Shown here in pieces: positions 1-28,256 of a stretch of 64,000 bases of DNA. The notes under the pieces are model-generated. The model was not told the origin of the DNA. It worked only from the letters and a program-made list of their open reading frames with translations, and did not search any database. The position numbers and the translations under genes are program-made. How positions within the stretch are numbered: the first letter of the stretch is position 1; each line of letters opens with the position of its first letter. The stretch lies in sequence record NC_005083.2, one strand, 5' to 3'.

Positions 1-19
1 GCATTCGCCCCTTTTTTTA
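1..19. terminator. Right half of a Rho-independent terminator cut by the window edge
   Basis: gcattcgcccc followed by a T run; resembles the gggagc-attc-gctccc-ttttt terminator at 25419; overlaps the stop of the - strand gene ending at 17. Confidence 0.5.
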
Positions 20-1072
20 TGGTCTGTAGATCATGTGATTTGAACCCATTCGTTCCCATGTACCTAGATTCATGCGATTTTTCATTTCAACGAAGAATGC
101 GGGGTTTGCTCTAATGTCATCAAGTGGCAGTGCAACAACACCTTCAGTTTTATGCGCCAATAGCTCTAGTTTATCAAGCAAATCAGACGTTGTACGACCG
201 TCATATTTGAATTGACTGAACCAATAACCAATCTTACTGAATTTCGTATCTCTTGTGTATTTCACATCAAAGCCTTTCAGAGCATACGCTAAGTTACTTT
301 CTTTACCGTGAAACGGCTTGCGATATGCGCTATGTTCAGCACCAGCACGAGCAAGCAATCTCTTCTTAGCTGCGTCTGGTAGATTGAACCACCCATCAAA
401 GTTTTTCTTGAAGTTCAACATCCATGCTTCTGGCGTAGCTGGTGAGCCTTTGAAGTATGCTTTCGTATCAGCAATGGCTTGTGCATAGCGTGCGTTAATC
501 TCATGAGAATAGTTCTGATATTCGTCGTGAGACGCTTCGTGACCGCTTTTAGCGTGACGGATGAACTCTTTATCAATGTATCCGCGTTTACGCCCTGAGT
601 GTTGATACACGCCCTCTGCGTCGCTTGTCTCGAAGTCTTCAATGTCACCAGAACGATAGTTGTCGTAAGCGTGTTGCAGTTCATGTAATGCAGTGCTATA
701 CAACTGTGGTTTCTGCAATCTGAATTTCGCCATGATTTGACTAACTGCTGTTACTCCAGTTATATCCACGACAAGCTTGAGATACCCTGCTTCTGTGATC
801 GAGTCGTCATGTAATTTGCCATTCCAAACACCGAGTTCGGTTGGGTTATTATTGTCTAACTTCAGATATGCTAGAATACCTTCAGCTAGTAATGCATCGA
901 ACTCACTCTCACCAGTTCTGATATTCAGAGTTTTTGTGTTGACGGATAGTTTATTTGGATCCCATGGTGCTTTACTTAGAGCGCCTTCTAACTGGCGTTC
1001 CAATGTATCGACGATGGTTTTTGACGCTTGTTCTAATGCGCGTTGTGATTGTACGTTTTCAAAAATAATCAT
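17..1072 (-). CDS. 351 aa protein with zincin-like HExxH metallopeptidase motif; probable late gene
   Basis: ALHELQHAYD then a downstream Glu in YSHEINARYAQ; long ORF; TAAATA box upstream on the - strand. Confidence 0.6.
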   Translation of the reverse strand: MIIFENVQSQRALEQASKTIVDTLERQLEGALSKAPWDPNKLSVNTKTLNIRTGESEFDALLAEGILAYLKLDNNNPTELGVWNGKLHDDSITEAGYLKLVVDITGVTAVSQIMAKFRLQKPQLYSTALHELQHAYDNYRSGDIEDFETSDAEGVYQHSGRKRGYIDKEFIRHAKSGHEASHDEYQNYSHEINARYAQAIADTKAYFKGSPATPEAWMLNFKKNFDGWFNLPDAAKKRLLARAGAEHSAYRKPFHGKESNLAYALKGFDVKYTRDTKFSKIGYWFSQFKYDGRTTSDLLDKLELLAHKTEGVVALPLDDIRANPAFFVEMKNRMNLGTWERMGSNHMIYRP

Positions 1073-1090
1073 CTTTTTTCTCGAATTCGG

Positions 1091-1152
1091 TTGACTGTAT
1101 TACTTATTTAGGTTAATATCTCTCTCATCGAAACGAAAGAGAGAACATTATG
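1091..1152 (+). promoter_or_regulatory. Early-type sigma70 promoter cassette with RBS
   Basis: TTGACT 1091-1096, 17 bp, TAATAT 1114-1119, ATCGAAACG 1127-1135, GAGAGAACATTATG. Confidence 0.75.
1105..1110 (-). promoter_or_regulatory. T4-type late promoter core (TAAATA)
   Basis: tattta on + reads TAAATA on -, about 33 nt upstream of the ATG at 1072. Confidence 0.6.
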
Positions 1153-1845
1153 ACTAATGCAGCACGCAAATATGTATACGACATCTTCCATGATGAGCTT
1201 CAAAAGCCGGTTGTGAATCTAGACGTATTTAAAATCAAGGGTTCAGATGGTAAGCCAGTGATTAACTATCTATCGAACCCGCACCTACGCAAACAACGCT
1301 TTATTATGTTCGTGAATAAACGACATAACATCAAGTATGGACGTTCTTTTTGGTCGCATGATATTCGTGATGATTGTGACAAAATCGAAGGTACTTGGTC
1401 GAGCGTGGCTAAGGAAATCATCAAACGCAAAGCCGAATACGCAAATTACGTGACTAAGACGTATCTTGATTACGACTATGGTGTTGAAGAGCCGACCCTT
1501 GCAATCATCGACAAGATGCTGAACAAGCCGAAGCGTTTTCACGTTGCAAAGTACATCAATAATGAACTGTGTGTCAGTTCGACGAACAATTCAACTGTGC
1601 TAATTGATCGTGATACTGGTGTGAAATTCGTTGCGAAGATGCAAGATTATCGCCATACTAGTGATATAATGCGACTTGCAACACCTGAAAAAGTGTTTAC
1701 ACCTAACGAAGAAAAAGCACTTTGCAGTGCAATTACACATCTTGTAAATTCTCGCATCAACGATATTCGTGCTAAGAAACGTGCGAAAGAAGAGAAACGC
1801 CGCCAAGCAAAACGTCAACAACTAATCGAAGCATACGGGGCATAA
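1150..1845 (+). CDS. Hypothetical protein, 231 aa, basic C-terminal helix
   Basis: ORF behind promoter cassette and RBS. Confidence 0.85.
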   Translation: MTNAARKYVYDIFHDELQKPVVNLDVFKIKGSDGKPVINYLSNPHLRKQRFIMFVNKRHNIKYGRSFWSHDIRDDCDKIEGTWSSVAKEIIKRKAEYANYVTKTYLDYDYGVEEPTLAIIDKMLNKPKRFHVAKYINNELCVSSTNNSTVLIDRDTGVKFVAKMQDYRHTSDIMRLATPEKVFTPNEEKALCSAITHLVNSRINDIRAKKRAKEEKRRQAKRQQLIEAYGA

Positions 1846-1847
1846 TC

Positions 1848-2240
1848 ATGGCATACGAAGTAATCAACGGCAAATTGCGTAAAGTAAAGAAAAACAAGCC
1901 ACGCGACTATGATAAAGAATGGTCAAAGATGCACGAATCTGCCAAGAAGCAAGTCGAAATCATGGATCGTATTCATGAACGTGAGCGCATTGACCGTCTA
2001 GGTACTCGTGAGCGTCACGAAGCAATGATTGACCTTGCTAAACGCAATGAGCGTAAAGGTAAGAAAGGCGGTGACTGTAACGTAACTCAGTGTCAAAAGC
2101 CAGGCGCAAGCTCTTACAACACTGCAATGAGAGCGTATTACTGCGAGTCTTGTGCTCACGATATTTGGCAAGCAGGTCAACGCGACGGTCGTGACTTCAT
2201 TCGACCAACACCAGATTACACATACAAGTACGAGGGTTAA
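1848..2240 (+). CDS. Hypothetical protein with C-terminal Cys cluster (possible Zn finger)
   Basis: CNVTQC...YYCESC; follows upstream gene closely. Confidence 0.75.
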   Translation: MAYEVINGKLRKVKKNKPRDYDKEWSKMHESAKKQVEIMDRIHERERIDRLGTRERHEAMIDLAKRNERKGKKGGDCNVTQCQKPGASSYNTAMRAYYCESCAHDIWQAGQRDGRDFIRPTPDYTYKYEG

Positions 2241-2244
2241 TCTC

Positions 2245-3708: not shown

Positions 3709-4011
3709 ATGAAGAAACAAATATTAAACATTCAGCGCGACGATGCGAAATTCGAGCTATATCGTCAAGGTCAAGCTGCACGTCATGCACGTGCTGAAAT
3801 CATCCGACACGTTGCGAAGAATCATAACCCATTTCTAGTTGGTCAATACACGCTTTACAAAGAGCACGACGTGAAAATCGTTCGTCAGTTGCTGCGTTAT
3901 GCTGAGATAGATGCTGATGTGCGAGTTGTCCCTACGATTGGTCGTTTACCAGACTGTTTGAACGAAATTCACGGAATCGGGTTCGAGGTAACGCTAAATA
4001 ATGATAGTTAA
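3709..4011 (+). CDS. Hypothetical protein, 100 aa
   Basis: GAGG RBS, ORF. Confidence 0.8.
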   Translation: MKKQILNIQRDDAKFELYRQGQAARHARAEIIRHVAKNHNPFLVGQYTLYKEHDVKIVRQLLRYAEIDADVRVVPTIGRLPDCLNEIHGIGFEVTLNNDS

Positions 4012-4285
4012 CATTGCTCATCATTCTTTTGATGTGTACATTGGTCGCGGCACACCGTTCGGAAATCCATTCAAAGCAGGGATCGACGGCACTCGGAGCG
4101 AAGTTATTGAGCTTTATCGAGAGTGGTTGCGCATTCAATTACAAGACGACGAATTTAAAAAGCAGTTTATGCAACTAAAAGGAAAGATTCTCGGCTGTCA
4201 TTGTAAGCCAAAAGCGTGCCATGGCGATGTAATTCTCGAAGAACTTGATAGATTGAGCAGCCCACTAAACAATTTTATAGGTTAA
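4001..4285 (+). CDS. DUF4326-family protein
   Basis: DVYIGRGTPFGNPF and LGCHCKPKACHGDV motifs. Confidence 0.85.
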   Translation: MIVNIAHHSFDVYIGRGTPFGNPFKAGIDGTRSEVIELYREWLRIQLQDDEFKKQFMQLKGKILGCHCKPKACHGDVILEELDRLSSPLNNFIG

Positions 4286-4288
4286 TCT

Positions 4289-4582
4289 ATGAGAGAAGCA
4301 ATTGCATTATTAAGCAACACGAGAATGGGATATACTGACATTAGCGCATTTGGCGATCCAGTATTATATGTTCATGCGGGACATGAGACGGTATTAAAAG
4401 TGCAATACACTGAAGATTGCTACTCATTTTACGACTACAGAAGCAAGTATCTTTATACAGAGCAGTCCATCGACGACTTAGAGATACATTTGAAATCAAT
4501 AGATGTCGGGTTAGACGATGATCTACCGTTAAATGGGAACATCGACAAAGACACGATACCAGACGGGGAATTTTTAGAATGA
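4289..4582 (+). CDS. Hypothetical protein, 97 aa, acidic C-terminus
   Basis: ORF, ATGA-coupled to next gene. Confidence 0.7.
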   Translation: MREAIALLSNTRMGYTDISAFGDPVLYVHAGHETVLKVQYTEDCYSFYDYRSKYLYTEQSIDDLEIHLKSIDVGLDDDLPLNGNIDKDTIPDGEFLE

Positions 4583-5499
4583 AGTTTAGTGAATATCAAA
4601 GAATAAACGAATCTCTGGATCGCCCTGCCAATTATAAACTGGTTAGAGAACTCCCAAACTTAAACGTGTATGCGTTTCAAGTTGATGGTGTTTATTATGA
4701 AATAGACATTCAGAAATCAAACATACGAGAGCCTAATGGGATGCAGTCAATGAAAGCTGAAGTCTCATTCAAAGCACTCGACGGTAGTGGTTATCAACTA
4801 ACCAAAAAAGACGATAAAACGGCACGAATTGTACTATCAACCGTAGTTGATGCTATCTTCAGCTTCGTACGCGAATACAATCCTGCTCAAATATTATATT
4901 CTGCATTCAACGATGCTGATCCGTCAGATGCGGCTAAACGACTTCGTTTATATCAGATCATGACTAAAGCAAAACTGCGTGAATTCCCCGAATATGATTT
5001 CCGAAACGTTGGGCGTGATTTCATCGTATACGATGTCAATTACCAAAAACGAGTCGAGGAATTTTCAAGAAGAGCACGTAGACCAGTGGGATATGAAGAA
5101 AGATCAGACCACGTTGAAGTGAATTTATCACATGCCAACGCCTTTGCGTTTATACGAGCGTTTGGGGTAAATGAAGGCGACTCGAAGAGCGGCGTACTAG
5201 GTAAAGGTCGAGCTTTCGTAGGAGCAACAAACGAAATTAAAGCACGTCTGAGAGTAGATCGTGTGGTGTATGAAATGTCTGACAGAGAAGGGTGGCTTGC
5301 GGCTCTTCAGCACCCTATTTTTGACTATGGCGAGGGTCCTGAAGTTGATCGAACATATCTAGTCGGGGCATTTAAAAACTTCTATATCGTGTTGACTAGT
5401 CAAACAAGTCTAAAAATATACACCGATGATGCTGCGTTTACAAAATATGTGAATGCTTTCGACGCGCCATGGTTAAACCCAGAAATAATGGAATCTTAA
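4579..5499 (+). CDS. Hypothetical 306 aa protein, paralog of 5502..6353; candidate internal head protein
   Basis: N-terminus MKFSEYQRINES; shared motif YSAFNDADPSDAAKRLRLY. Confidence 0.8.
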   Translation: MKFSEYQRINESLDRPANYKLVRELPNLNVYAFQVDGVYYEIDIQKSNIREPNGMQSMKAEVSFKALDGSGYQLTKKDDKTARIVLSTVVDAIFSFVREYNPAQILYSAFNDADPSDAAKRLRLYQIMTKAKLREFPEYDFRNVGRDFIVYDVNYQKRVEEFSRRARRPVGYEERSDHVEVNLSHANAFAFIRAFGVNEGDSKSGVLGKGRAFVGATNEIKARLRVDRVVYEMSDREGWLAALQHPIFDYGEGPEVDRTYLVGAFKNFYIVLTSQTSLKIYTDDAAFTKYVNAFDAPWLNPEIMES

Positions 5500-5501
5500 A
5501 A

Positions 5502-6353
5502 ATGAAATTTAGCGAATATCAAAACGAGCTAACGGAAGCATTTGATCGACCTGCACAGATCACAGCACGTCGTGGCAATCAGAGTTTTTTCATGATTGGT
5601 GACACTGAGTACATGGTCGGGTTGTATTACGACGACTCGAAAAAATCACTCGGAGTTGACTTCATGCATAAGCCAGGTGATTCAGCAACGTACCACTACA
5701 GCTTAGCCAAAGGCAACTCAAAAGACGCCATGACTGTTTTTGCAACCGTGATTGCAGAAATCAAGCGACTTATGAACGACAAACCGGTCAATCGAATCAG
5801 CTTCAGTGCGTTTCAAGACTCTGACAGTTCAGATGCTAAAAAGCGTTTTCGATTGTACAAGCGCATGGCAGAACGCTTCAGCAAAGAACTCGGGTTCAGA
5901 ATGACCACTTATGGTGATTCTTTCGTATTGACACGTGTAAACCCTGTTGCAGTCAACGTAGAAGAACCAACTGGTTATGATACAGCGTGGGGTACTGAAA
6001 TGCTCGATCTGCGTGAAGTCAACGACGCTGCAATTGCCAAAGTCACAGAAGGTGATGGTGAATGGCGTTTGAATAACTGGAACAAGCTGATTGTTCGCAA
6101 CGGAAAAGTAACGCTAACATCGGGTCCAATTCGAATGTCAGACGCTTGGTACGATGCGTTTTACGACTTAGAATGGTATCACGATGAAGAAGGCGAACAA
6201 TGGTTCGATGATGAACAGAAGATCGCGATCATCAATGGTAAAGTTTGGGTCGTCAATGACATGGAAATTACTATTTGGCCAAGTATTGAGAAATTAGAAT
6301 TGCAAAGTGACTCGGAATTATCAAGCGGGACACGTCAATTGCTTGGATATTAA
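5502..6353 (+). CDS. Hypothetical 283 aa protein, paralog of 4579..5499; candidate internal head protein
   Basis: N-terminus MKFSEYQNELTEA (start moved from 5469); motif FSAFQDSDSSDAKKRFRLY. Confidence 0.8.
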   Translation: MKFSEYQNELTEAFDRPAQITARRGNQSFFMIGDTEYMVGLYYDDSKKSLGVDFMHKPGDSATYHYSLAKGNSKDAMTVFATVIAEIKRLMNDKPVNRISFSAFQDSDSSDAKKRFRLYKRMAERFSKELGFRMTTYGDSFVLTRVNPVAVNVEEPTGYDTAWGTEMLDLREVNDAAIAKVTEGDGEWRLNNWNKLIVRNGKVTLTSGPIRMSDAWYDAFYDLEWYHDEEGEQWFDDEQKIAIINGKVWVVNDMEITIWPSIEKLELQSDSELSSGTRQLLGY

Positions 6354-6357
6354 TCAG

Positions 6358-6382
6358 AAAGGTAGCTTCGGCTACCTTTTTT
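6358..6382 (+). terminator. Rho-independent terminator with UUCG loop
   Basis: aaaggtagc-ttcg-gctacc-tttttt. Confidence 0.9.
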
Positions 6383-6403
6383 CGTTTTCAGAGCAAAAAA
6401 CGG

Positions 6404-6447
6404 TTGCATGAAATGCTCAAAACCCCTATTATAGCTTCATCGAAACG
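6404..6447 (+). promoter_or_regulatory. Early-type promoter cassette
   Basis: TTGCAT 6404-6409, 17 bp, TATTAT 6427-6432, ATCGAAACG 6439-6447. Confidence 0.8.
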
Positions 6448-6462
6448 AAAGAGGAAAACGAA

Positions 6463-6762
6463 ATGGATGTAACATCAAAACTTGAATTGTCGATGAAAGA
6501 ATTCGTTGACGTTCCATACAACGAGCACAAAACTCATTCTCTTGTTGGTCAAGCAAGTGAGCACATTAACTCGTACTACAATAATCCGGGTGAAATCGTG
6601 ACTTCAAACGTCATGTACGTTGAAATCAACGGTGGTATTGTGTATGCTGTAACGCACTCTAAGAGTCGCTACCAGCTAACCAATGTGTCTCATGATGAGA
6701 TTGCACAAATGGTTAAAGCCGCAAGCGAACGCGGGATTAATATTCCGCTTTACAAAAACTAG
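6463..6762 (+). CDS. Hypothetical protein, 99 aa
   Basis: GAGG RBS behind promoter. Confidence 0.85.
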   Translation: MDVTSKLELSMKEFVDVPYNEHKTHSLVGQASEHINSYYNNPGEIVTSNVMYVEINGGIVYAVTHSKSRYQLTNVSHDEIAQMVKAASERGINIPLYKN

Positions 6763-6822
6763 AAAAATTGCTTTAATACAAACTGATTCACTACTTTTGA
6801 TTACTTTTGAGAGAAATATATT

Positions 6823-7137
6823 ATGACTACTATCGTAAACTTCACTGCTGCAATCGAACTAACTACTAAAGCTCTTGTTGAAACTAACCGTATCGAGGGT
6901 CGTTTCTACAACTCACGCATCGGTCACGAGCAAGGTGAGCAAGCGAAAACTGACGCAGTTCGAGCGTTCAAAGTAATCGACAACAAAGTATATGCTGAAA
7001 CTCGCAACTGCGTGTTCCATCTTCGCAATCTGTCTGCTCTTGCCCTAGCTGACTTCAATACTATCAACGCACCAGTGTACATGAAGAAAGCCGATGCTGA
7101 GTTCGACGAAATGGTTAAATCAGCCCTGTTCTCGTAA
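6823..7137 (+). CDS. Hypothetical protein, 104 aa
   Basis: GAGAGA RBS; coupled to cd. Confidence 0.85.
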   Translation: MTTIVNFTAAIELTTKALVETNRIEGRFYNSRIGHEQGEQAKTDAVRAFKVIDNKVYAETRNCVFHLRNLSALALADFNTINAPVYMKKADAEFDEMVKSALFS

Positions 7138-7589
7138 TGTACCCGAAGAATAAAAGCTATTATGACTTGGTGTATCTTGACATCGCCAAGTCATTTGCTA
7201 AGAAAAGCACCTGCAAACAGAAGCAAGTAGGTGCTGTCATCGTCAAGAATGATCGCATTATCTCACACGGTTACAATGGTACGCCGTCAGGCATGCTTCA
7301 CTGTAAAGATACCGCTGACTTCGGTGATCTAACTCACCGTCAATGGTCAGAAATTCACGAGATTCATGCTGAACAAAACGCGATTTGCTACGCTGCACGC
7401 GCTGGCATATCTACTGAAGGCGCGACTATGTACGTCACAGCGTCGCCGTGTCATAACTGTGCCAAGCTGATAGTCGCGGCTGGTATCAAAATTCTCATTG
7501 TAGGTTCGATTTACAGCGGTTCGCAACCCGATTGGTGGCACTGGCTACGTGATCGCGGTGTGAAAGTTATTATGTTCGAAGACGAATAA
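7137..7589 (+). CDS. cd: dCMP deaminase
   Basis: VGAVIVK..IISHGYNGTPSG, HAEQNAI and PCHNC Zn-deaminase motifs. Confidence 0.95.
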   Translation: MYPKNKSYYDLVYLDIAKSFAKKSTCKQKQVGAVIVKNDRIISHGYNGTPSGMLHCKDTADFGDLTHRQWSEIHEIHAEQNAICYAARAGISTEGATMYVTASPCHNCAKLIVAAGIKILIVGSIYSGSQPDWWHWLRDRGVKVIMFEDE

Positions 7590-7643
7590 TGTTTAATATA
7601 AGTAATTCGGACTTATAATAGAGCTTTAACAAGAGAGAAACAT

Positions 7644-8570
7644 ATGAAAAGTACAATGTTTTTGAACAACATCACATGCATCGACCATGCATGGGTTGAT
7701 GATATGGGTGAAATGAATGGTAATAGCTACAATCTATGTGTAGAAATTACCGGTGAAGTTGACGAGACTGAACAAGTTGTTATTGATTTCAGTGGTTGTA
7801 AGAAAGCAATCAAACATCTTGTGGATGATTCTGAATTCGCCATTGATCATCGTCTAGTCGTCGTTGACGGGTTTAGTGATGCAGTTCTTTCTCAAGTCGA
7901 AGATCGACTACGCATTCAAATCGACACGCCGGTCTTTCATGCAGTGTCCACGGTTGACGACTGGTATCAAGTCATCAAGCCGAGCGAATTGATTGAAGCC
8001 GACTTTAAAATCCCTAGCGATTCTCTGTACATGTCGTATGTTACTGAGTATCTTGAAGATATGCTGCTTGAACAGCTACGCAAGCAAGGTTATCCCGTTA
8101 CACACGTCGCTGTAGAGCTTTCAGAGTCGTTTGACTTACCATCATGGGCAAACAGTCACGTTGAATTCAATTACGCTCACGGACTGCGTTCAAGCACATC
8201 ATACGGATGTCAGAACATTGCACACGGTCATCGTTCATTCATTGCAGTAGATCAGCATTTGAACAGTAACGGTCGCAAGGTGCTGAAGCGCATTGCTAAA
8301 GAAATGAGCGGTTATATTGCTTGGTCAGAAAACATTCGCAAAGAAGATGAAGTGTCTTACACTTCAAAACGCGGCAACTTCTACTTGAGACACAGCAATA
8401 TCAAAGTAATCCCGACGGAAACTACAGTCGAAAATCTAGCCAATTACATTGCAACTACATACGAAGAAGAGTTCCAACGAATGGGAGTTCAGCGTGTGTG
8501 GGTATCTGAGGGTCTATCAAAAGGCTCGGTTGTAGACATCAAAATCAACAAAGAATTGCTCTATAAGTAA
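7644..8570 (+). CDS. queD: QueD-like 6-carboxytetrahydropterin synthase (double length, two T-fold halves)
   Basis: HGLRSSTSYGCQNIAHGH and TTVENLA motifs in C-terminal half; VIDF..CKKAIKHLVD...IDHR in N-terminal half; adjacent to folE. Confidence 0.8.
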   Translation: MKSTMFLNNITCIDHAWVDDMGEMNGNSYNLCVEITGEVDETEQVVIDFSGCKKAIKHLVDDSEFAIDHRLVVVDGFSDAVLSQVEDRLRIQIDTPVFHAVSTVDDWYQVIKPSELIEADFKIPSDSLYMSYVTEYLEDMLLEQLRKQGYPVTHVAVELSESFDLPSWANSHVEFNYAHGLRSSTSYGCQNIAHGHRSFIAVDQHLNSNGRKVLKRIAKEMSGYIAWSENIRKEDEVSYTSKRGNFYLRHSNIKVIPTETTVENLANYIATTYEEEFQRMGVQRVWVSEGLSKGSVVDIKINKELLYK

Positions 8571-8587
8571 TCAACAAATTAATGTTT

Positions 8588-8611
8588 AGTAGCACGTCTC
8601 GGCGTGCTATT
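8588..8611 (+). other. Intercistronic hairpin (possible terminator or processing site)
   Basis: agtagcacg-tctcgg-cgtgctatt between queD and folE. Confidence 0.6.
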
Positions 8612-8638
8612 ATTGTTTTCTATCAATGAGGAAATAGA

Positions 8639-9307
8639 ATGTTAGACAAAAATAAAGTAGATCCAGTACTTGGACAAAAAGTTGAAGCGCATCTTCGTAA
8701 AATCGGGATGCACACGCCGACTGTTGAAAACGGTCTAACTGATGATGAAAAGAAAGCTATTCTTGAAGATCGTTTCACTGACATCATGCAAGCTCTTGGT
8801 CTTGACTTATCAGACGATTCATTAGTTGATACTCCGAAGCGTTGGGCTAAGATGATGGTGAATGAGCTTATGAGCGGTCTATCGCCAGATATGTTCCCGA
8901 AATGTACTGCTGTAGACAACAAGATGAACTACGATCAGATGGTTTGTGAAAAAGGAATTACTGTTCTTTCTCAGTGTGAGCATCACATCGTAACAATCGA
9001 CGGCTTTGCCACTGTCGCATACATTCCGAAGAACAAAGTTCTTGGTCTGTCGAAAATGAATCGCATCGTTGAGTACTTCGCTCGTCGTCCGCAGATTCAA
9101 GAACGTCTGACTGTTCAAATCGCTGAAGCACTGAAGTTCATTCTTGAAACTGAAGACGTAGCGGTATTGATCGACGCCAAACACTATTGCGTGAAAGCAC
9201 GCGGTGTTGAAGATAACAACTCAAGCACAGTGACTAGCCACTTATCTGGTGCTTTCCGTAACGAACCAGAGGCTCGCGCTGAGTTTATGTCACTTGCACG
9301 AGGGTAA
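8639..9307 (+). CDS. folE: GTP cyclohydrolase I
   Basis: DTPKRWAKM, SQCEHH, GLSKMNRIV, RPQIQERLT, HYCVKARGV. Confidence 0.97.
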   Translation: MLDKNKVDPVLGQKVEAHLRKIGMHTPTVENGLTDDEKKAILEDRFTDIMQALGLDLSDDSLVDTPKRWAKMMVNELMSGLSPDMFPKCTAVDNKMNYDQMVCEKGITVLSQCEHHIVTIDGFATVAYIPKNKVLGLSKMNRIVEYFARRPQIQERLTVQIAEALKFILETEDVAVLIDAKHYCVKARGVEDNNSSTVTSHLSGAFRNEPEARAEFMSLARG

Positions 9308-9310
9308 TTG

Positions 9311-10687
9311 ATGATAATTGAATACGTTATGTCTGCGACGGGTCATGCTCGTCTCGGCGCAGCACATAAGCTAATGGACGTGGTTGACACGTCCTATTTG
9401 CGCGACATTTTAAATGCAGCGCAAGATCTCGACGGCGTTCACAAAATCAGTATGCTGTACAATGCATATACTGAAAAGAAAGTCGGTCATCAAATCAATG
9501 ACTTGTTCGGTGATTCTGTATACAAGGTACACGTCGATTCGGGTGGTCTACAGATAGTCAACTTGGGTTTAGAGAACACGCCCGAACTTCGCAAAGCAGT
9601 ATACGAGAATCAAGCAGAATCTGGTGATATTGGCATGTGTTTTGACGAAATCCCATTGCACAACGAAGCAAAGGGTGGTGGCGCTGCTCGTATCAACACG
9701 AAAGACAAGGTCTTCATGTATGATCTAGCGTACAAGTACGGCGTCAAAACAGGTAAGAACATTCGCGCACAAATCGAAACTTATATCGAGAAGGGTAGCA
9801 AATGCAAACCGTATATCATCTTACAAGGCAACTCAGACGACGACTTTAAAGCATTCAGTGACGGGATTATGTCTCAACTCGAAGGCGTTGAAGATCACAT
9901 TGCTGGTTGTGCTGCTGCCGATACATGCATTGGTAATGGCGTACGTGAGTCTATCGACATGATGAGCGTCATTCCGAAACTCAACATCCCAGAGAAAGCA
10001 AAGAAATCAGTGCATATGCTGGGAGTTGGCTCAGTTAAACGTCTATTGCCTGCTGTAGCACTTATCAGAAGTGGTTATTTTGGTGATGACTTTCATATCA
10101 GCTATGACTCATCAACGCATACTGGATGTCTGACTAACCGAGAATACACAGACAAGCTTGGTCGCCGTCGTAAAATCTCAGGTCACGGAATTATGAAAGA
10201 TGGTAAGAAATTGCCTTCTCGTGAGCTTGATGAAATGCTAGATGAAGTGTGGGGTCGATTCGGTCATACTCTACCGCGTAGCAAAGAAGAGTTCAAGGAA
10301 TTCGCGACACGTCTGTGGTTGAAAGAACTCGACAAAGAAACAATGACTGACGAAGATATTGTGTTTGAAGTTGCTTGCAACTTGTGTATAATCTTATCAC
10401 AAGTCAACAACTTTCAAGCGATTATCTCTGAAACGTTTGACTTGAATACGCCAAAAGCTGCTGATTTGTCAGCGTTCTTCGGTGGTTCTATTGAGAAAAA
10501 AGAGCCGCAAGAGGGATTCAAGAAGTGGTCAGCGATTCGTCGTCTTGATGTTCTTGATAAACTACTTGACGTTAAAACTATCGAAGCATATGATCGCTGG
10601 CACAGTAGCTATGTTGATAGACTACCGTCAATGCGCATTCGTCGCGGCACAACTGCTGAATTCCCAGCTTTCAAAGAACAAGAATAG
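9311..10687 (+). CDS. dpdA: TGT-fold 7-deazaguanine transglycosylase, DpdA-like (DNA-targeting inferred)
   Basis: HVDSGGLQ, CFDEIP, ILQG, HMLGVGS, SYDSS motifs; inside the queD-folE-queF-queC cluster; no CxCxxC Zn site typical of bacterial tRNA TGT. Confidence 0.75.
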   Translation: MIIEYVMSATGHARLGAAHKLMDVVDTSYLRDILNAAQDLDGVHKISMLYNAYTEKKVGHQINDLFGDSVYKVHVDSGGLQIVNLGLENTPELRKAVYENQAESGDIGMCFDEIPLHNEAKGGGAARINTKDKVFMYDLAYKYGVKTGKNIRAQIETYIEKGSKCKPYIILQGNSDDDFKAFSDGIMSQLEGVEDHIAGCAAADTCIGNGVRESIDMMSVIPKLNIPEKAKKSVHMLGVGSVKRLLPAVALIRSGYFGDDFHISYDSSTHTGCLTNREYTDKLGRRRKISGHGIMKDGKKLPSRELDEMLDEVWGRFGHTLPRSKEEFKEFATRLWLKELDKETMTDEDIVFEVACNLCIILSQVNNFQAIISETFDLNTPKAADLSAFFGGSIEKKEPQEGFKKWSAIRRLDVLDKLLDVKTIEAYDRWHSSYVDRLPSMRIRRGTTAEFPAFKEQE

Positions 10688-10701
10688 CGCCTTCGGGCGC
10701 T
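10686..10701 (+). other. Intercistronic UUCG hairpin
   Basis: agcgcc-ttcg-ggcgct, only a weak U tract after it. Confidence 0.65.
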
Positions 10702-10716
10702 CTTTATGAGGTAAAC

Positions 10717-11625
10717 ATGAGCAATTATGATCAAGTTTCAGCTATTGCTGCTGAACATTTAGGTAAAAAAGCTGGCGATTACAGCGATTTCGTTGACATC
10801 GTAGAAGTTCGCCCTGATTTACTCGTGCCAATCCCGCGTGAACTGAATCGAACTGACTACGGTATCACAAATGAAGACTTTGCAGGGTTTGATACGTGGC
10901 ATGGCTTCGAAGTTTCTGCACTGACTGAACAAGGTCTGCCTGTATCAGGCATGGCTAAAGTAGTGTATCCGAGTGATTCACCGAACATCGTTGAAAGTAA
11001 ATCAATGAAACTGTACTGGAACAGCTTCAACATGGCTAAAGTCGCTGCGACTCGTGCTGAAGTGAAAGATGCAATTGAAGCAATCGCGTCGCGTGATCTA
11101 TCTGAAGTCATCGGTGCGCCTGTTCAAGTAAGTTTCTTCACTGAAAAACTAACTCAACCGCATGGTATGACTGGCTTTGCTGAACTCGACAAATATGTTT
11201 CTGAATCGACTGTGTTTGACTCTGAGAGTGGTGCTGACGCTGATCTATTGCAAGAGTCGCACATCAAGAAACTGAAAGTGTTCACGCCTAATCTGCGTTC
11301 AAACTGTCGCGTTACACATCAACCCGACTTCGGTGATTTGTACGTATACATGAGCGGCGAAAAGACTCCGACTGTTGATAGTCTGATGCAATACATCGTT
11401 TCTTTCCGCAAAGAGAATCATTTCCATGAAGAATGCGTTGAAATGATTTACAAAGCGTTGCTTGACAAGTTCGACCCGACTGAACTGATGGTCACAGCGT
11501 TATACACACGTCGCGGTGGATGGAATATCTGTCCAGCACGAGCGACACACGAAGAGCTATTGCCAGAAGCACTTGGTAGTAAATCTGTCTCGCACACTAA
11601 CGGAAGTTGTTTATTCCGTCAGTAA
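10717..11625 (+). CDS. queF: PreQ0 nitrile reductase QueF (two-domain type)
   Basis: QueF motif VESKSMKLYW, catalytic CRVTHQPDF, FHEECVE, LYTRRGG. Confidence 0.95.
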   Translation: MSNYDQVSAIAAEHLGKKAGDYSDFVDIVEVRPDLLVPIPRELNRTDYGITNEDFAGFDTWHGFEVSALTEQGLPVSGMAKVVYPSDSPNIVESKSMKLYWNSFNMAKVAATRAEVKDAIEAIASRDLSEVIGAPVQVSFFTEKLTQPHGMTGFAELDKYVSESTVFDSESGADADLLQESHIKKLKVFTPNLRSNCRVTHQPDFGDLYVYMSGEKTPTVDSLMQYIVSFRKENHFHEECVEMIYKALLDKFDPTELMVTALYTRRGGWNICPARATHEELLPEALGSKSVSHTNGSCLFRQ

Positions 11626-11680
11626 TAAGAGCTATGATGAGTGTTCAATTGTGAGCACTCATATACTTGAGAGGTTAAAA

Positions 11681-12397
11681 ATGAAAGTAGTATCTGTTCT
11701 AAGCGGTGGCTTGGACTCAACAATCCTTACGTACAAACTAGTTGACGAATTCGGCAAAGACAATGTGTTTGCATTATCGTTCTACTACGGTCAAAAACAG
11801 TCGATTGAGCTAGAAAAAGCTAAATTGACTTGTCAAAAGCTCGGCATCGAGCATCGTCTAATTGACATTTCATTCTTAGGTGAAGTCGTCGCGCCAGTCT
11901 GTGCGAATATCGCTGGTTCAGATGTTGCTATGCCAACTATTCAAGATGTTCTCGGTGACCCTCAGCCACCAACTGAAGTTCCATATCGTAACATGCTATT
12001 GAACACAATCGCGTTCTCATTCGCACAAGCAAATGGTTGTTCAGCGGTGTTTACGGGTATTCAAGTGCATGACGCATATGGTTATTGGGACTGCACGCAA
12101 GATTTTCTTGACGGTATGAACAAAATTTCAGCACTGAATCGTCAACACGAAATCACATTACATGCGCCGTTCGCTCAAATGTCAAAAGCTGATGAAATCG
12201 CTATCGGTGTTGAGCTTGGTGTGCCGTTCGAGGATAGTCTGACTTGTTACGACCCGAACGAAGCTGGCGAAAGCTGTGGTAAATGTCCGTCGTGTGCTGA
12301 ACGCATCATGAACTTCGGCAAAGCTGGTATAGTCGATCCTGCGCCTTACTCAATTGACATCCCGTGGAAGCAAGTATTTGCTAAGGCAGGTCATTAA
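11681..12397 (+). CDS. queC: 7-cyano-7-deazaguanine synthase QueC
   Basis: SGGLDST, FYYGQK, VPYRN, YWDC, TCY...CGKCPSC; start moved from 11516 to 11681 after GAGAGG. Confidence 0.95.
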   Translation: MKVVSVLSGGLDSTILTYKLVDEFGKDNVFALSFYYGQKQSIELEKAKLTCQKLGIEHRLIDISFLGEVVAPVCANIAGSDVAMPTIQDVLGDPQPPTEVPYRNMLLNTIAFSFAQANGCSAVFTGIQVHDAYGYWDCTQDFLDGMNKISALNRQHEITLHAPFAQMSKADEIAIGVELGVPFEDSLTCYDPNEAGESCGKCPSCAERIMNFGKAGIVDPAPYSIDIPWKQVFAKAGH

Positions 12398-18708: not shown

Positions 18709-19062
18709 ATGTCCAATTTCAAAGCAAATCTAAAAAGTCGCAGTACAATTAAGATCAATGGTACTGAGTATCACGGTACAAGTGTGACGATCAAAAACGG
18801 CAAAGTCGTCGTTGACGGTCGTTTGCAAGGTGACATTGATGATCGCGTGGTGAACGTGTACATTGATGGTGACTGTACGCTTGTTCAGAACGAGAACGGC
18901 AATATTGCATGTCGTAACGTACAAGGTGACGTGTCAACGACTAATGGCGATATTGAATGTGACGATGTTAACGGTTCAGTATCATCAACGAACGGCGACA
19001 TTAAATGCTGTGATGTTGGCGGTAACGTAAGCACAACCAACGGGGATATTATCCGAAAATGA
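18709..19062 (+). CDS. Beta-strand repeat protein (DUF4097-like)
   Basis: Three repeats of G.VS(T/S)TNGDI; start at 18709 after AAGGGG (18685 possible). Confidence 0.75.
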   Translation: MSNFKANLKSRSTIKINGTEYHGTSVTIKNGKVVVDGRLQGDIDDRVVNVYIDGDCTLVQNENGNIACRNVQGDVSTTNGDIECDDVNGSVSSTNGDIKCCDVGGNVSTTNGDIIRK

Positions 19063-19331
19063 AAGATCAAACTCGAATCAAAGAAGTAATTGACGCCGCG
19101 ATTGAGAAAATTGAATCACAATCGACACAAAGTTTCAGCGTGCAAGAATTTACGCCGTGTGATGTTGTCAATTACTTGCAGCAAATCGGCTACGAAGCTC
19201 ATGATCTAGAGACAAACGGTTGGCAAGTTGACTTCTGGCAAGATTTCAGCAAAGACGGCTGCAAGACACTTACCTTTTCAGGTAGCTGGTACTTTGGTCA
19301 AGCTACATTGAGTGAGGCATACAATGACTAA
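19059..19331 (+). CDS. Hypothetical protein, 90 aa
   Basis: Coupled ORF. Confidence 0.8.
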   Translation: MKDQTRIKEVIDAAIEKIESQSTQSFSVQEFTPCDVVNYLQQIGYEAHDLETNGWQVDFWQDFSKDGCKTLTFSGSWYFGQATLSEAYND

Positions 19332-24245: not shown

Positions 24246-24932
24246 ATGAAACGATTTAAGAAGCACATTAAAAAGTATGACGAGCATGGCGTAGTTCAGT
24301 ATAATATGCTGATGATATTCGCTTTGATTGTCACAATATCAATGTCAATCGCACTTGTTGCGTCAAATATTCTGTTTGCATTTGAGCTTTCAGCTAGTGA
24401 CGCTAACATCAAAACACCTGGCGATGCGTTCTGGACGGTTTGGATGGCTATGAGCACAATTGGATTTGGTGATCATTATCCCGTAACGACTGGTGGTAGA
24501 TTTGTTATTGGTTCTATGTTTGTCGTTGGTGCGTCGCTGATTGGTCTTAACATCGGTATCGCGAATGCGTGGATTACATCTAAGTTCGACAAAAGCATAC
24601 AGAATCGTGTGTTGAAGAGTCAAAACGATGCTCTATTGCAGAAATTAGATCGTCTTGAGACACATCTAGGAATCGGTCAAGAGGTGTTGTTTTCGAAAGA
24701 TGCTCATGGTATAGATACAATGATTGACCAGTATTTTGACAGCAACGACAAAGCAGAGAGATTTGTCACACTCGGTCAAGATGATAGCGGTCGATATGTC
24801 GTGGCAATAAATCAGCAAATCATCGAAACACAAAAGACATCATTGAAATGGCACACGTTCATTAAAGAAGATGATGCGACGAAATTCTACAAAGACACAA
24901 GTGAACTATTCCACACGGAGCTATTCATATGA
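24246..24932 (+). CDS. Potassium channel protein (2TM-1P, Ion_trans_2-like)
   Basis: TM1, pore helix DAFWTVW, filter TIGFGD, P.T..GR, TM2, cytoplasmic tail. Confidence 0.92.
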   Translation: MKRFKKHIKKYDEHGVVQYNMLMIFALIVTISMSIALVASNILFAFELSASDANIKTPGDAFWTVWMAMSTIGFGDHYPVTTGGRFVIGSMFVVGASLIGLNIGIANAWITSKFDKSIQNRVLKSQNDALLQKLDRLETHLGIGQEVLFSKDAHGIDTMIDQYFDSNDKAERFVTLGQDDSGRYVVAINQQIIETQKTSLKWHTFIKEDDATKFYKDTSELFHTELFI

Positions 24933-25414
24933 TTCGTAATATCTTATTTGCTGCTCTTGCAGCTATGACACTCGCAGCATGTGATAACAATTCTGCGACA
25001 TTAGACACAAATGCTTACTATGCTGAACAAGAACAGCTATTAGTTGAAGCACCGACGACTGAAATGTTTGATACACAGCCATCTGTTGTTCAACCTGTAC
25101 AACAACCGGTGATTATTCAGCAAGACGACGGGTTTGATCTAGGTGACGCAGCAATTGGTTTTGTTGCTGCTGAATTGATAGATGAAGTTGGTGATGCTTT
25201 CGAATCGAAGCATAAGAAGACTTACGTCGCGGCAGTGAAACAGCCTGTAATTAAGAAAGTTACACCGTATCAAGCACCTAAAAAACCTGTAGTCGTTAAG
25301 CCAACTGTAGTCAAACCGAGCATAGTTGAGACGAAACCTGAGAAAAAAGAGGGTTTTTTCAAGAAAGCAGTCAAAAAGGTTAAAAAAGTTAAGCGTAGTA
25401 AACGCAGAAAATAA
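24929..25414 (+). CDS. Putative lipoprotein, Lys/Pro-rich C-terminus
   Basis: Signal peptide with lipobox LAAC; ATGA-coupled to the channel gene. Confidence 0.8.
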   Translation: MIRNILFAALAAMTLAACDNNSATLDTNAYYAEQEQLLVEAPTTEMFDTQPSVVQPVQQPVIIQQDDGFDLGDAAIGFVAAELIDEVGDAFESKHKKTYVAAVKQPVIKKVTPYQAPKKPVVVKPTVVKPSIVETKPEKKEGFFKKAVKKVKKVKRSKRRK

Positions 25415-25440: not shown

Positions 25441-25983
25441 CTATTTGTTTTTTGATAAAACATCGAGAATTCTAGCTAATTCAGATTCGATGTGCTCAAG
25501 CTCCATTAGATATTCATCTGATTGCTTGATGTCACTACGTAGAAGACCTTTTGAAGTCGCAATATCAACGTCGCTATCTAGACTACCACGCAATTTACGT
25601 ACCAAGAACAACGCACGATTCAAATCACGAGTGAATACGTTCACTGTCTTGTCAGTGATCTTGTCTTCTGGCATACTCTGATATTTGTTCAGTTTTCTCA
25701 TGGTTTTCTTCAGTTCTTTGAAGTCTTTACGCGCTTGACCGCCAGCGAATAACACGCCACCAATCAAACCATTAAGTCCCATTGAGATACCAGCCCATGC
25801 CGCTAATGGCAATGCGATAGAAAGTCCTGCTGTACCCGGTGCTGCTGCAATTGAAGCACTTGCCATACCTACAAAGCCACCCACTGCTGCGCCGATTGCA
25901 GCACTATTTTTAGCCCATTGTCCGATAGTTGCTTCTTTCAACTCATCTGAATTCTTGAATTCATCAAATGTCTTTAGTTCCAT
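25441..25983 (-). CDS. Late gene, 180 aa, Gly/Ala-rich hydrophobic hairpin; candidate internal head protein
   Basis: MELKTFDEFKNSDELKEA N-terminus (AAGGTG RBS); GAAVGGFVG...GLIGG glycine-zipper-like segments. Confidence 0.75.
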   Translation of the reverse strand: MELKTFDEFKNSDELKEATIGQWAKNSAAIGAAVGGFVGMASASIAAAPGTAGLSIALPLAAWAGISMGLNGLIGGVLFAGGQARKDFKELKKTMRKLNKYQSMPEDKITDKTVNVFTRDLNRALFLVRKLRGSLDSDVDIATSKGLLRSDIKQSDEYLMELEHIESELARILDVLSKNK

Positions 25984-26014
25984 TCTGTTCACCTTGATTC
26001 ATGCTCATAAAAAA

Positions 26015-26107: not shown

Positions 26108-26113
26108 TATTTA
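26108..26113 (-). promoter_or_regulatory. Late promoter core TAAATA
   Basis: ctaaata on - strand in an AT-rich intergenic region. Confidence 0.6.
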
Positions 26114-26167
26114 GTGTTAGCTAGACACTCGTATAGCAATTATCTCTAATAAAAGTAGAAAAAAATG

Positions 26168-26244: not shown

Positions 26245-26661
26245 ATGACTCCAAAATCAATCATTCGTGCAGCAAATACTCGCGTGTCCGAGCTTCAAAT
26301 CTTCAATGGCGAGAACAGTACAGTCGTAGTTGGTGCACCAGGTAGTGGTAAAAACGCTATGCTGATGGGAATGCTTATGCAACGTGGCGTATCTGACTGT
26401 ACAATGATCGTTACAGAAATGCGTGCTAGTGACATGGCGGAGAAGCTAGGTGCAGGTGCGCTTGTAGTCAATGGCGGGCTTGACCTCGAATCTCTTGTTG
26501 GTGCAGTTGCATTTGCGTGTACGCAATCGCGTTCTGACATTTTCATTGAGCACGTTTCTCCGATTCTCGGTCACAATATCGTTGAGATTCTAGAGGCAAT
26601 CGCTAAGCCATTCAACAAGCGTATATATGTTGGTATGCAAGCTTCGCGGGGTTGTCTATGA
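26245..26661 (+). CDS. Small P-loop protein, truncated RecA/DnaB-like fold
   Basis: VVVGAPGSGKN Walker A variant, IVTEM, IFIEH; only 138 aa. Confidence 0.6.
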   Translation: MTPKSIIRAANTRVSELQIFNGENSTVVVGAPGSGKNAMLMGMLMQRGVSDCTMIVTEMRASDMAEKLGAGALVVNGGLDLESLVGAVAFACTQSRSDIFIEHVSPILGHNIVEILEAIAKPFNKRIYVGMQASRGCL

Positions 26662-26933
26662 ACTTCTTTCAGATAAGCATGAATCTAGCGACTGATTCAT
26701 CAATTAACCCAGACGAAGCGTGGGCTGATAAGCAATTGATTGTTGCTTCTAGTCATGAAATGGCTAGAAAGCTTGCCGACGCACGCGAGAAAGGTCGTCA
26801 TGGTTGGCATGACCCTAATGTGTGCTCTATCGACTATCTCTATGAGTTGCGCGATAAAGCACTTAAAGACAATGATCACGTCAGTGTGATGAACTACACT
26901 GCAATGATCGCTATGCGGGAGAGTGTACAATGA
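26658..26933 (+). CDS. Hypothetical protein, 91 aa
   Basis: MARKLADAREKGRHGW...DHVSVMNY pattern; coupled ORF. Confidence 0.75.
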   Translation: MNFFQISMNLATDSSINPDEAWADKQLIVASSHEMARKLADAREKGRHGWHDPNVCSIDYLYELRDKALKDNDHVSVMNYTAMIAMRESVQ

Positions 26934-27970
26934 ACGTACTATTCACGAGTCTATTTGGCTCGAAATTATATGGCACAGACACGCCAGAGTCAGACACTGA
27001 CTATAAAGCAGTCTATCTACCCGAGTTGCGCACGCTACTTCGTGGTGTTGCAATAAAGAACTCAGTGCATTCCACTGGCAAATCGTTCGAGAAGAACGGC
27101 GCAGACGATGAAGACTTCGAATACATCCCTGTTCAAGTGTTCATGCGTGACTTTCTCGGCGGTCAGTCATATGCAATCGAGTTAGCATTCAATGCACTAC
27201 AGAACCCTGATGACTGTAAGCCAGAGTTCTACAACATGTGTAAAGAAATGACTCGCAAGTACTTGACATCAAACGTCAAAGCAATGACTGGCTATGCGCT
27301 TAACCAAGCACAGAAGTACGGCATCAAAGGTACTCGACTGAACAGCCTTATGCAATTTGCACGTGCTGTAGAGACGCACAACGTCGATCCTAAAGCGAAG
27401 TTGGGTTCAAGTCCTGAGTTGTGTAAGCAACTATGGGAACTGTGTGCAGAAGACGCTCACGTGCGTTTTCAGTGGTATCATGGGCCCAAGACTAAAGACG
27501 CAAGCGACTTGAAAGACCCTGCGTTCAGTGTGCTTGAGAAAGTATTCGGTCTTGAGATCACGTTTGAAGAAGCTGCCGGTCGTCTTGAGAAGATGATGAG
27601 CAAATACGGCGCTCGTGCATATCAAGCGCGTGCTGCAAGCGGCTCAGACTGGAAAGCAATCTCTCATGCTATGCGCGTGATCGATCAAGCAATCGACATA
27701 CTGACAGTTGGTAAGCTTGAGTTTCCGTTGAAGCACGCTGCGTTCTATCGTGACGTGAAACAAGGTAAATACAAGTGGGAATACGTGTCTGAAGTGCTGC
27801 AAGAGCGCCTTGAATTGCTCGAAAAAGCAAAAGATACAACGTCACTTCCACATCACACGCCTGATTTGGTTGCGAGATTTTACACCTGGTACGATGATTA
27901 CCTTGATGAGTTTTATTTCCCTTGTGAAATGACTGATGAAGAAGTCAAACAAATGCTAGGCGCGTACTAG
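26930..27970 (+). CDS. nrdC.11: Pol-beta superfamily nucleotidyltransferase, T4 NrdC.11-like
   Basis: FGSKLYGTDTPESDTDYK, QAQKYGIKGTRL, DWKAISHAMR. Confidence 0.88.
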   Translation: MNVLFTSLFGSKLYGTDTPESDTDYKAVYLPELRTLLRGVAIKNSVHSTGKSFEKNGADDEDFEYIPVQVFMRDFLGGQSYAIELAFNALQNPDDCKPEFYNMCKEMTRKYLTSNVKAMTGYALNQAQKYGIKGTRLNSLMQFARAVETHNVDPKAKLGSSPELCKQLWELCAEDAHVRFQWYHGPKTKDASDLKDPAFSVLEKVFGLEITFEEAAGRLEKMMSKYGARAYQARAASGSDWKAISHAMRVIDQAIDILTVGKLEFPLKHAAFYRDVKQGKYKWEYVSEVLQERLELLEKAKDTTSLPHHTPDLVARFYTWYDDYLDEFYFPCEMTDEEVKQMLGAY

Positions 27971-27971
27971 T

Positions 27972-27979
27972 TATAAATA
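27972..27979 (+). promoter_or_regulatory. T4 late promoter TATAAATA
   Basis: Exact consensus 26 nt upstream of ATG 28005. Confidence 0.85.
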
Positions 27980-28004
27980 CGTTAAACAAACAAAGAGGTT
28001 TAAC

Positions 28005-28256
28005 ATGCAAGGTTTTAAAGATTATTTCAAGAAAGGTGAAGTCAAGCTGCAAGAAACTGAACAAGAGTTTCACGAGCGCGTTGTCAAGCATCGTAAAGTA
28101 GATGACAAACGTTATCCAGACTTATCTAAGGCTGGGCTAGAGGGTCCATACACTGATCTTAATGGTAAAGTGTATTACTATGACCCACGTGAAGGCATGT
28201 ACTACGATCCCGACACTGACATTTACATTACTGCAAAAGATTTACGTTTACCGTAA
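28005..28256 (+). CDS. Late gene, 83 aa, Tyr-rich YYYDPxxGMYYDP repeat; candidate internal head protein
   Basis: GAGG RBS; MQGFKDYFKKGEVKLQET N-terminus; own promoter and terminator. Confidence 0.8.
   Translation: MQGFKDYFKKGEVKLQETEQEFHERVVKHRKVDDKRYPDLSKAGLEGPYTDLNGKVYYYDPREGMYYDPDTDIYITAKDLRLP

Follow-up and report, generated by a model that had tools for sequence, protein, structure and literature searches.

Candidate cleavable capsid-targeting leaders on a dispersed set of hypothetical proteins of vibriophage KVP40

We analysed a 64,000-nt stretch of DNA, the window, which corresponds to bases 62001–126000 of the phage KVP40 genome (NC_005083.2) with 100% identity (bases 4000–9000 compared); window position 1 is KVP40 62001. 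KVP40 is a T4-related myovirus (Straboviridae, Schizotequatrovirus) with a Vibrio host. This study concerns five genes in the window, KVP40.0103,.0115,.0116,.0150 and.0154 (Table 1), and the short leader peptides with which their products begin. All five are labelled 'hypothetical protein' in RefSeq. A preliminary description had proposed that they encode head-packaged proteins bearing a T4-like capsid-targeting N-terminus. The open reading frames (ORFs) and N-termini quoted there were confirmed for all five genes. For two of them RefSeq sets the start further upstream, at 5469 instead of 5502 for.0116 and at the GTG at 25992 instead of the ATG at 25983 for.0150. We prefer the downstream starts because all orthologs use them, and a good Shine–Dalgarno sequence precedes ATG 25983; the RefSeq starts (with the extra 5469–5501 and 25984–25992) are probably placed too far upstream. 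No named relative of any candidate was found: Pfam and PHROGs returned only families of unknown function, and PDB sequence searches were empty.

Table 1. Candidate genes, late-promoter-like boxes and further carriers in KVP40. Positions are those of the window unless prefixed with KVP40 (genome coordinates, outside the window); a slash marks the predicted cut; aa, amino acids; pI, isoelectric point.
Feature	Position	Strand	Remarks
KVP40.0103	17..1072	-	351 aa; short N-terminal MIIFE/N ahead of helix 1
KVP40.0115	4579..5499	+	306 aa; predicted leader 4579-4611, MKFSEYQRINE/S
KVP40.0116	5502..6353	+	283 aa from ATG 5502; predicted leader 5502-5537, MKFSEYQNELTE/A
KVP40.0150	25441..25983	-	180 aa from ATG 25983; predicted leader 25933-25983, MELKTFDEFKNSDELKE/A
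KVP40.0154	28005..28256	+	83 aa; predicted leader 28005-28055, MQGFKDYFKKGEVKLQE/T; mature part 66 aa
Late promoter TATAAATA, canonical T4-type	27972-27979	+	25 nt before.0154 start
CTAAATA late-promoter-like box	26108-26114	-	124 nt before.0150 start
CTAAATA late-promoter-like box	1105-1111	-	32 nt before.0103 start
CTAAATA candidate box	3994-4000	+	abuts KVP40.0113 start; 578 nt upstream of.0115 start
KVP40.0058	KVP40 31688-32569	+	third paralog of.0115/.0116, 41% identity over N-terminal domain, E = 7e-33
KVP40.0097	KVP40 58233-59687	+	484 aa, acidic, weak HEAT match; begins MKLFTEFYQEVRLDE/I; TCTAAATA at -35
KVP40.0311	KVP40 173231-173410	-	59 aa; leader MKLKTFDEYHKLVE/K; mature 45 aa, pI 9.8; TATAAATA at -32; inside tRNA cluster
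Late operon adjoining head genes	KVP40 231409-235256	-	TCTAAATA before.0377 and before.0372

T4 uses a short N-terminal tag to place its internal proteins in the head, from where they are injected along with the DNA. According to a review of L. W. Black's work, the first 10 residues of the internal protein IPIII are enough for encapsidation; targeting depends critically on the aromatic residues 4 and 7, processing on residues 8 and 10 (I and E), and the prohead protease gp21 cleaves after L/I-x-E (PMC9026906). In the T4 record IPII and IPIII have a common 10-residue leader ending I-A-E/A, IPI has a 19-residue leader ending I-T-E/A whose first seven residues follow the pattern of IPII and IPIII, and Alt opens with the six-residue MELITE/. 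Reviews have already noted sequences like this capsid-targeting sequence (CTS) in further T4-like phages (PMC9026906). The leaders of.0115,.0116,.0150 and.0154 contain an aromatic-x-acidic-aromatic motif within the first nine residues and, a few residues on, (L/I)-x-E, which bears out the common core of paired aromatics and (I/L)-x-E that had been proposed for them. The two targeting aromatics, three apart, are present in these four proteins and not in.0103. All five predicted cut sites (INE/S, LTE/A, LKE/A, LQE/T and IFE/N) have a small residue after the Glu and are kept in orthologs.

In order to judge how often such leaders arise by chance, we scanned the N-termini of ∼409 predicted genes from the whole KVP40 genome with the pattern ^M.{1,5}[FYW].[DE][FYW].{0,14}[LIVM].E. 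The full pattern matches seven KVP40 genes:.0115,.0116 (at its alternative start),.0150,.0154,.0097,.0375 and the annotated.0311. At first-ATG N-termini five matches were observed against a mean of 0.46 when the residues of each N-terminus were shuffled, and in 2000 such shuffles a count of five was never attained, although the pattern was composed post hoc from hits already known, which makes the P-values optimistic. Internal protein positions give an expectation of 1.1 matches. Among 696 ATG-ORFs beyond the predicted gene set the only match was the annotated.0311, displaced by crude gene calling, which leaves 0 of 695 non-genic ORFs. The preliminary description had named a leader pattern equally common at random phage N-termini as an outcome that would speak against it; neither the shuffles nor the non-genic ORFs reproduce the enrichment. 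As a positive control, T4 was scanned with the same pattern: IPI, IPII and IPIII were found, plus gp61.1 and one unannotated, spurious ORF of 36 residues.

The T4 gene 61.1 (T4 stretch 18966–19130, minus strand) is an observation in its own right. Its 54-aa 'hypothetical' product begins MKTFKEFIKE/D and combines the first-seven pattern of IPI with an I-x-E of IPIII type. No annotation marks it as an internal protein, and it is the sole real T4 gene besides IPI–III that the full pattern catches. Two further candidates were dropped. A short Alt-like pattern (^M.{0,3}[LI].E) proved too common, with 28 matches against 18.7 expected in KVP40, and showed no enrichment in T4. KVP40.0365 (MGRFMEY...) lacks (L/I)xE, and its PHROG profile begins at residue 5, which makes its start doubtful. 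Synteny with the T4 ipI locus was sought as well, but none of the ORFs downstream of KVP40 57B opens with a CTS-like sequence.

KVP40.0115 belongs to PHROG 6387 (function unknown). In the family of.0115 and.0116, MKFSEYQ and the cut-site Glu (E12) are invariant in 10 of 10 family members, even between KVP40 paralogs that are only 22% identical, and mean column identity is 0.90 in the leader vs 0.65 in the remainder. The leader codons of.0115 and.0116 differ synonymously, and selection therefore acts on the peptide. The third KVP40 paralog,.0058, lies outside the window. It has the L-x-E/AFDRPA junction of the.0115/.0116-type paralogs, but its leader begins MIIFE, as in the unrelated.0103. L-x-E/AFDRPA is thus common to three paralogs with differing leaders. 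Their first domain is common and their second domain differs. This exchange of leaders on homologous bodies, a sign of modularity, is the strongest argument for reading the leaders as targeting peptides. In the AlphaFold2 (AF2) model of.0116 (mean predicted local distance difference test, pLDDT, 85), residues 1–10 are of low confidence, and a low-confidence helix at the N-terminus leads into two domains; Foldseek found no significant PDB fold for this model, merely a weak, non-significant resemblance to GNAT and RNase E-like proteins.

Conservation at the predicted cut is also evident in.0150. Its orthologs (47–61% identity) retain KTF[DE]E[FY]...L-x-E-A-T-I, and in remote homologs (25–53% identity) M1, K4, E17 and A18 are among the invariant positions, i.e. 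the predicted Glu-Ala bond is kept. Phage D479 has two.0150 paralogs. Past the leader,.0150 consists of a hydrophobic Gly/Ala-rich stretch of 55 residues (∼27–82), in which LFAGG.ARK is conserved, and then a helical tail that is charged; the mature pI is 9.5. The mature part of.0154 includes a Tyr-rich repeat. It lies marginally above the Pfam OCRE threshold, a match that is probably due to composition. A distant.0154 homolog (P0035) that has lost residues 18–35 begins MSKLTFREFLTE/G, a nearly canonical T4-type leader.

KVP40.0103 differs from the other four. Across 18 homologs the motifs HELQH (HELQHAxDxxRS) and HEINAR do not vary; the AF2 model (pLDDT 87) places them on two long helices and leaves residues 1–6 as a free tail. 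Some members of the family give sub-threshold Pfam matches to curated metallopeptidases (M76, M13, Tox-MPTase2, SprT) and none above threshold; a PDB sequence match was not found, and Foldseek searches of PDB and BFVD returned uncharacterised phage proteins and no named peptidase. Of the 'zincin-like' label in the preliminary description, the invariant HExxH motif therefore stands, whereas a significant match to a metallopeptidase model or a solved structure was not obtained; the label is reasonable but unverified. The MIIFE start had been put forward as a weaker leader match. It does have a late box, but it falls outside the test pattern, and finding (L/I)xE close to the start is non-diagnostic, as the dropped Alt-like pattern illustrates. 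More telling is the family as a whole: the helix after the predicted cut is conserved and the preceding peptide varies in length, yet all these peptides end at the same Glu. Distant homologs have T4-like leaders, namely P0024 (MTQTFSQFITE/N), P0020 (..MKFTEYTIITE/N) and another that begins MRLQDFIIEEQELIE/S. A further homolog is fused to NUDIX and flanked by proteins with ADP-ribosyltransferase-type ART-PolyVal and lysozyme domains.

A separate observation was made on the metagenomic contig ERZ650163 NODE_845, where an ORF at 299–811 (plus strand), beginning with GTG, encodes an ART-PolyVal protein of 170 aa that has the near-perfect 10-residue T4-type leader (M)KSFKEYLVE/S. It lies 9 kb from the.0103 homolog that begins MTQTFSQFITE/N, and a 105-aa ORF starting MPNFKTFLSELKDE directly precedes that homolog.

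The machinery that such leaders would need is encoded in KVP40. The genes for gp67, gp68, gp21, gp22 and gp23 stand in T4 order, the first four being KVP40.0359–0362. Since gp21 is conserved (52% identical to T4 gp21) and the gp23 maturation site LNE/A aligns with T4 LTE/A, the (L/I)xE cleavage rule very probably holds in KVP40.

We then considered whether the genes are expressed late. KVP40 has only 13 copies of the canonical box TATAAATA, and 11 of these shortly precede genes. Of the 23 CTAAATA copies, 12 fall no more than 60 nt upstream of a start on the same strand (those of gp4, gp48 and gp19 among them), compared with 0–15% for control heptamers; because of this difference we regard CTAAATA as a working KVP40 variant of the T4 late-promoter box. 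The boxes that had been reported for.0150,.0154 and.0103 were found again, and relatives keep them: the TATAAATA box of.0154 stands at -32 to -35 in four of six relatives, that of.0103 takes the form [CT]CTAAATA between -38 and -40 in three genomes, two of them distant relatives, and that of.0150 is found as [AC]CTAAATA at -110 to -134 in six. The two.0150 paralogs of D479 have canonical CATAAATA/TATAAATA boxes at -29/-25. Late boxes also stand ahead of.0097,.0311 and the.0377–.0375 operon. For.0115 and.0116, the CTAAATA at 3994–4000 is the sole late-type box that could serve late expression; phage 1.081.O has ACTAAATA at the equivalent place.

The set as first proposed was not complete:.0058,.0097,.0311 and.0375, all outside the window, fit equally well or better. 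Orthologs of.0097 and.0375 retain the aromatic pair and L-x-E. The late operon next to the head genes encodes the prohead-protease-inhibitor-like.0376,.0375 (MLRFNEYEN..SLEE),.0372 (MIEFLTE/M) and.0371 (MSIIFE/R), and the D479 ortholog of.0375 begins MKTFSEFHYEN..LDE/A. The most T4-internal-protein-like gene of the KVP40 genome is.0311. Homologs were found in 250 phage records, mainly of Ackermannviridae (Salmonella, Klebsiella and Dickeya phages), with leaders such as MKTFGEFLTE/ and MKSFSDYLNE/. The head protease and core of Ackermannviridae are likewise of T4 type (PMC10892097).

We propose, with a probability of roughly 0.58, that these leaders are cleavable propeptides of the T4 CTS type and that a set of internal proteins is encoded at dispersed places in KVP40. 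The paired aromatics would attach the propeptide to the scaffolding core of gp22, gp67 and gp68 during prohead assembly, gp21 would cleave after the leader-terminal (L/I)-x-E, and the mature protein would remain in the DNA-filled head and exit with the DNA at infection. In the window the set would comprise the small Tyr-rich.0154, the basic Gly-zipper protein.0150 and the paralogs.0115 and.0116 with their common N-domain and differing C-domains, together with the zincin-like.0103 as a probable member with a short Alt-like propeptide; outside it,.0058,.0097,.0375 and.0311 would belong to it. Several independent lines converge on this proposal: the determinants mapped in T4, the enrichment of the pattern, the conservation of leader and cut site, leader swapping, the late promoters and the presence of protease and core. 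Furthermore, both AF2 models (.0116 and.0103) show the leader as an N-terminal extension that is unstructured or of low confidence. Targeting, cleavage, packaging and injection of the candidates are all inferred from such features.

Several known systems offer a comparison. Like the T4 internal proteins, the KVP40 set has leaders of 10–19 residues with aromatics three apart and (L/I)-x-E before a small residue, cargo that is mutually non-homologous, genes scattered in variable regions, and a gp21/gp22 core;.0311 in addition is small, basic, late-transcribed and located beside tRNA genes. In contrast to the T4 proteins, the mature parts have no sequence homology to IPI–III, the leaders read MKFSEYQ, MxLKTFDEF or MxGFKDYF instead of MKT[YF]xEF, most of the cargo is far larger (31–54 kDa) and acidic or neutral, one protein is hydrophobic, and packaging of the set is putative. 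Alt, the packaged ADP-ribosyltransferase of T4, is a precedent for packaged enzymes. It resembles.0103 in its enzyme size, its very short N-terminal peptide (MELITE/ vs MIIFE/) and its late gene, but.0103 has HExxH and not an ART fold, and a full CTS-like leader on an ART-PolyVal protein was seen only in the metagenomic relative. Many ejection or inner-body proteins of the giant phages SPN3US and phiKZ-like phages are cut after Glu in a short motif by a homolog of T4 gp21 (PMC9026906); these systems differ in motif and proteins and have no defined N-terminal aromatic targeting peptide.

A number of points weigh against the proposal, besides the post hoc origin of the pattern. Most mature products are large, with pI 4.2–7.4, whereas T4 IPI–III are small and basic: mature.0116,.0115 and.0103 have pI 4.95–7.4 and 31–39 kDa,.0154 is small but has pI 5.2, and only.0150 and the out-of-window.0311 are basic. 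The T4 proteins 46.2 (MTFDEFKN..), rI.-1 (MKFSDF..), 57B, nrdC.3 and uvsW carry the aromatic core without (L/I)xE, and none of them is known to be packaged; for this reason the aromatic core by itself is not diagnostic of packaging. KVP40.0115 and.0116 are translationally coupled within a plus-strand run of early-type genes,.0115 overlapping the stop codon of.0114, and no late promoter was found near them, the closest late-type box lying 578 nt upstream of the.0115 start. In.0154 conservation extends over the whole protein, and the leader is no better conserved than the remainder (0.70 vs 0.77). The hydropathy of.0150 fits two to three membrane spans (Kyte–Doolittle maxima 1.5–1.66), a poor match to a soluble core component. 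Literature searches yielded no virion proteome or N-terminal data for KVP40, phi-pp2, ValKK3, PVA8 or relatives. Of the interpretation in the preliminary description, the T4-CTS-like leaders, the conserved gp21-type site and the late boxes of.0103,.0150 and.0154 thus stand, while the missing nearby late box of.0115 and.0116 does not fit it.

The hydropathy of.0150 leads to an alternative that concerns this protein only. It may be inserted into the membrane, and it is possible, if tentative, that it is a late inner-membrane protein of the holin, antiholin, lysis-timing or superinfection-exclusion type whose N-terminus is a cytoplasmic regulatory tail. Such a role would suit the hydrophobic Gly/Ala-rich residues 27–82, the upstream late promoter, and the combination of span(s) with a charged C-terminal tail, features that are not holin-specific. 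It would also suit the neighbours (rIIA/rIIB and two ORFs, one K+-channel-like and one lipoprotein-like) and the absence of a holin annotation from all KVP40 stretches retrieved. Pfam gives weak sub-threshold matches to Phage_holin_3_6, LapA_dom and DUF6861, but Phage_holin_3_6 scores 20.6 bits vs a gathering cutoff of 28.4, no endolysin adjoins the gene, and the spanins lie 33 kb off. Moreover, KTFDEF..LKE/A is the most T4-IPI-like leader of the window, and its E/A is invariant across the.0150 family. Membrane insertion and packaging of.0150 are in any case mutually compatible; other phages have ejected membrane-active head proteins.

Two ORFs in this neighbourhood deserve mention. A 228-aa ORF (24246–24932, plus strand) has two hydrophobic segments around TIGFGD, the signature of K+ channel selectivity filters; KVP40 has no RefSeq coding sequence at this place, and the ortholog is labelled 'Kef-type K+ transporter' in relatives. 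It is followed by a lipoprotein-like ORF (24929–25414) whose signal peptide ends LAAC.

The main rival to cleavable targeting leaders holds that the shared N-terminus is a general feature of T4-like phage proteins unrelated to the capsid, be it an amphipathic N-terminal helix, a favoured translation-start context with AU-rich codons or a motif that binds another partner, and that the resemblance to the CTS is partly coincidental. T4 N-termini are indeed enriched for aromatic-x-acid-aromatic (9 vs 2.0 expected), five of the nine carriers not being known as packaged, and the leader begins a helix in the.0116 model; the early-type context of.0115 and.0116 and their lack of a proximal late promoter point the same way. 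Against this rival, the (L/I)-x-E/A/S/T is conserved too, as the invariant E17-A18 of.0150 and the junction common to three paralogs illustrate, and the.0103-family leaders of unequal length finish at one Glu. Composition-preserving shuffles and non-genic KVP40 ORFs do not show the enrichment, most carriers have late promoters, and according to the annotations no KVP40 carrier has a known non-virion function. We consider this rival rather unlikely.

Improbable, finally, is the view that these are gp21-processed prohead components with an accessory part in assembly or scaffolding, like gp67 and gp68, whose fragments exit, and that they are not injected effectors. In its favour, KVP40 gp68 begins MKFISE/A..LVE/A,.0375 sits in the late operon next to a prohead-protease-inhibitor-like gene, and the KVP40 head is larger and elongated, with size determinants that are not known (PMC3012670). 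However, the candidates evolve fast, and relatives differ in how many copies they have (D479 has two.0150 paralogs, KVP40 three.0115-type genes), which is typical of accessory or conflict genes and not of scaffold parts, and the HExxH of.0103 together with the ART-PolyVal and NUDIX neighbours and fusions of its homologs suggests enzymes.

If the leaders are CTS-type propeptides, the system is not an undescribed one, as had been suggested, but the known T4 internal-protein mechanism with new cargo. What appears to be new are carrier families unrelated to IPI–III, a second flavour of leader and a hint that the system reaches into Ackermannviridae; new as a host group are the KVP40-like vibriophages, for which we did not find internal proteins described in the literature. 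As to the cargo, T4 IPI, IPII and IPIII are specific inhibitors of GmrSD restriction enzymes (PMC12373910), and ART, NUDIX, lysozyme and zincin-like domains are typical of the polyvalent proteins of phages and conjugative elements, for which delivery together with the DNA is predicted (Iyer et al. 2017, PMC5512222). On account of this analogy and of the company of the.0103 homologs, a role in anti-defence or host takeover may be guessed. The.0103 homologs, together with their fusions and neighbours, share the zincin-like, ART, NUDIX and lysozyme repertoire with the polyvalent proteins (PMC5512222), whereas each putative KVP40 effector is a small polypeptide by itself, with a leader of its own, and not part of one giant multidomain protein.

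A wider reading, which we offer tentatively, is that KVP40-like heads carry a multi-effector arsenal of interchangeable parts. These could include at least two types of leader (MKFSEYQ and MIIFE) placed before a common cut site, a 'delivery' domain in.0058,.0115 and.0116 joined to C-domains reminiscent of polymorphic effectors, an enzyme of zincin-like type and a Gly-zipper protein that is injected and membrane-active. The CTS logic, shared with Ackermannviridae, might then be an ancient general cargo-loading code and not a T-even speciality. Should packaging hold true, internal (injected) proteins would be on record for the first time in the marine vibriophages of the Schizotequatrovirus/KVP40 group. 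A simple sequence rule would then be at hand for spotting such cargo in other phages with T4-type heads, and the leaders could be used as packaging tags for Vibrio phage engineering. Given that IPI–III inhibit GmrSD (PMC12373910), CTS-tagged families would be good places to seek counter-defence or host-takeover functions. If the proteins are not packaged, the conserved N-terminal motif would still want an explanation.

A direct counterpart to the targets of IPI–III is not obvious in KVP40. The KVP40 stretches retrieved carry no annotated gene for a hydroxymethylase or a glucosyltransferase; DNA with glucosylated hydroxymethylcytosine is therefore not expected, and the GmrSD targets of IPI–III (PMC12373910) have no obvious parallel. 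The window does contain, at 7644–13005 on the plus strand, a 7-deazaguanine (queuosine/archaeosine-type) cluster with PTPS-like, folE, QueF-like, queC and glutamine-amidotransferase-like genes and a 459-aa ORF, which suggests a modified guanine in the DNA.

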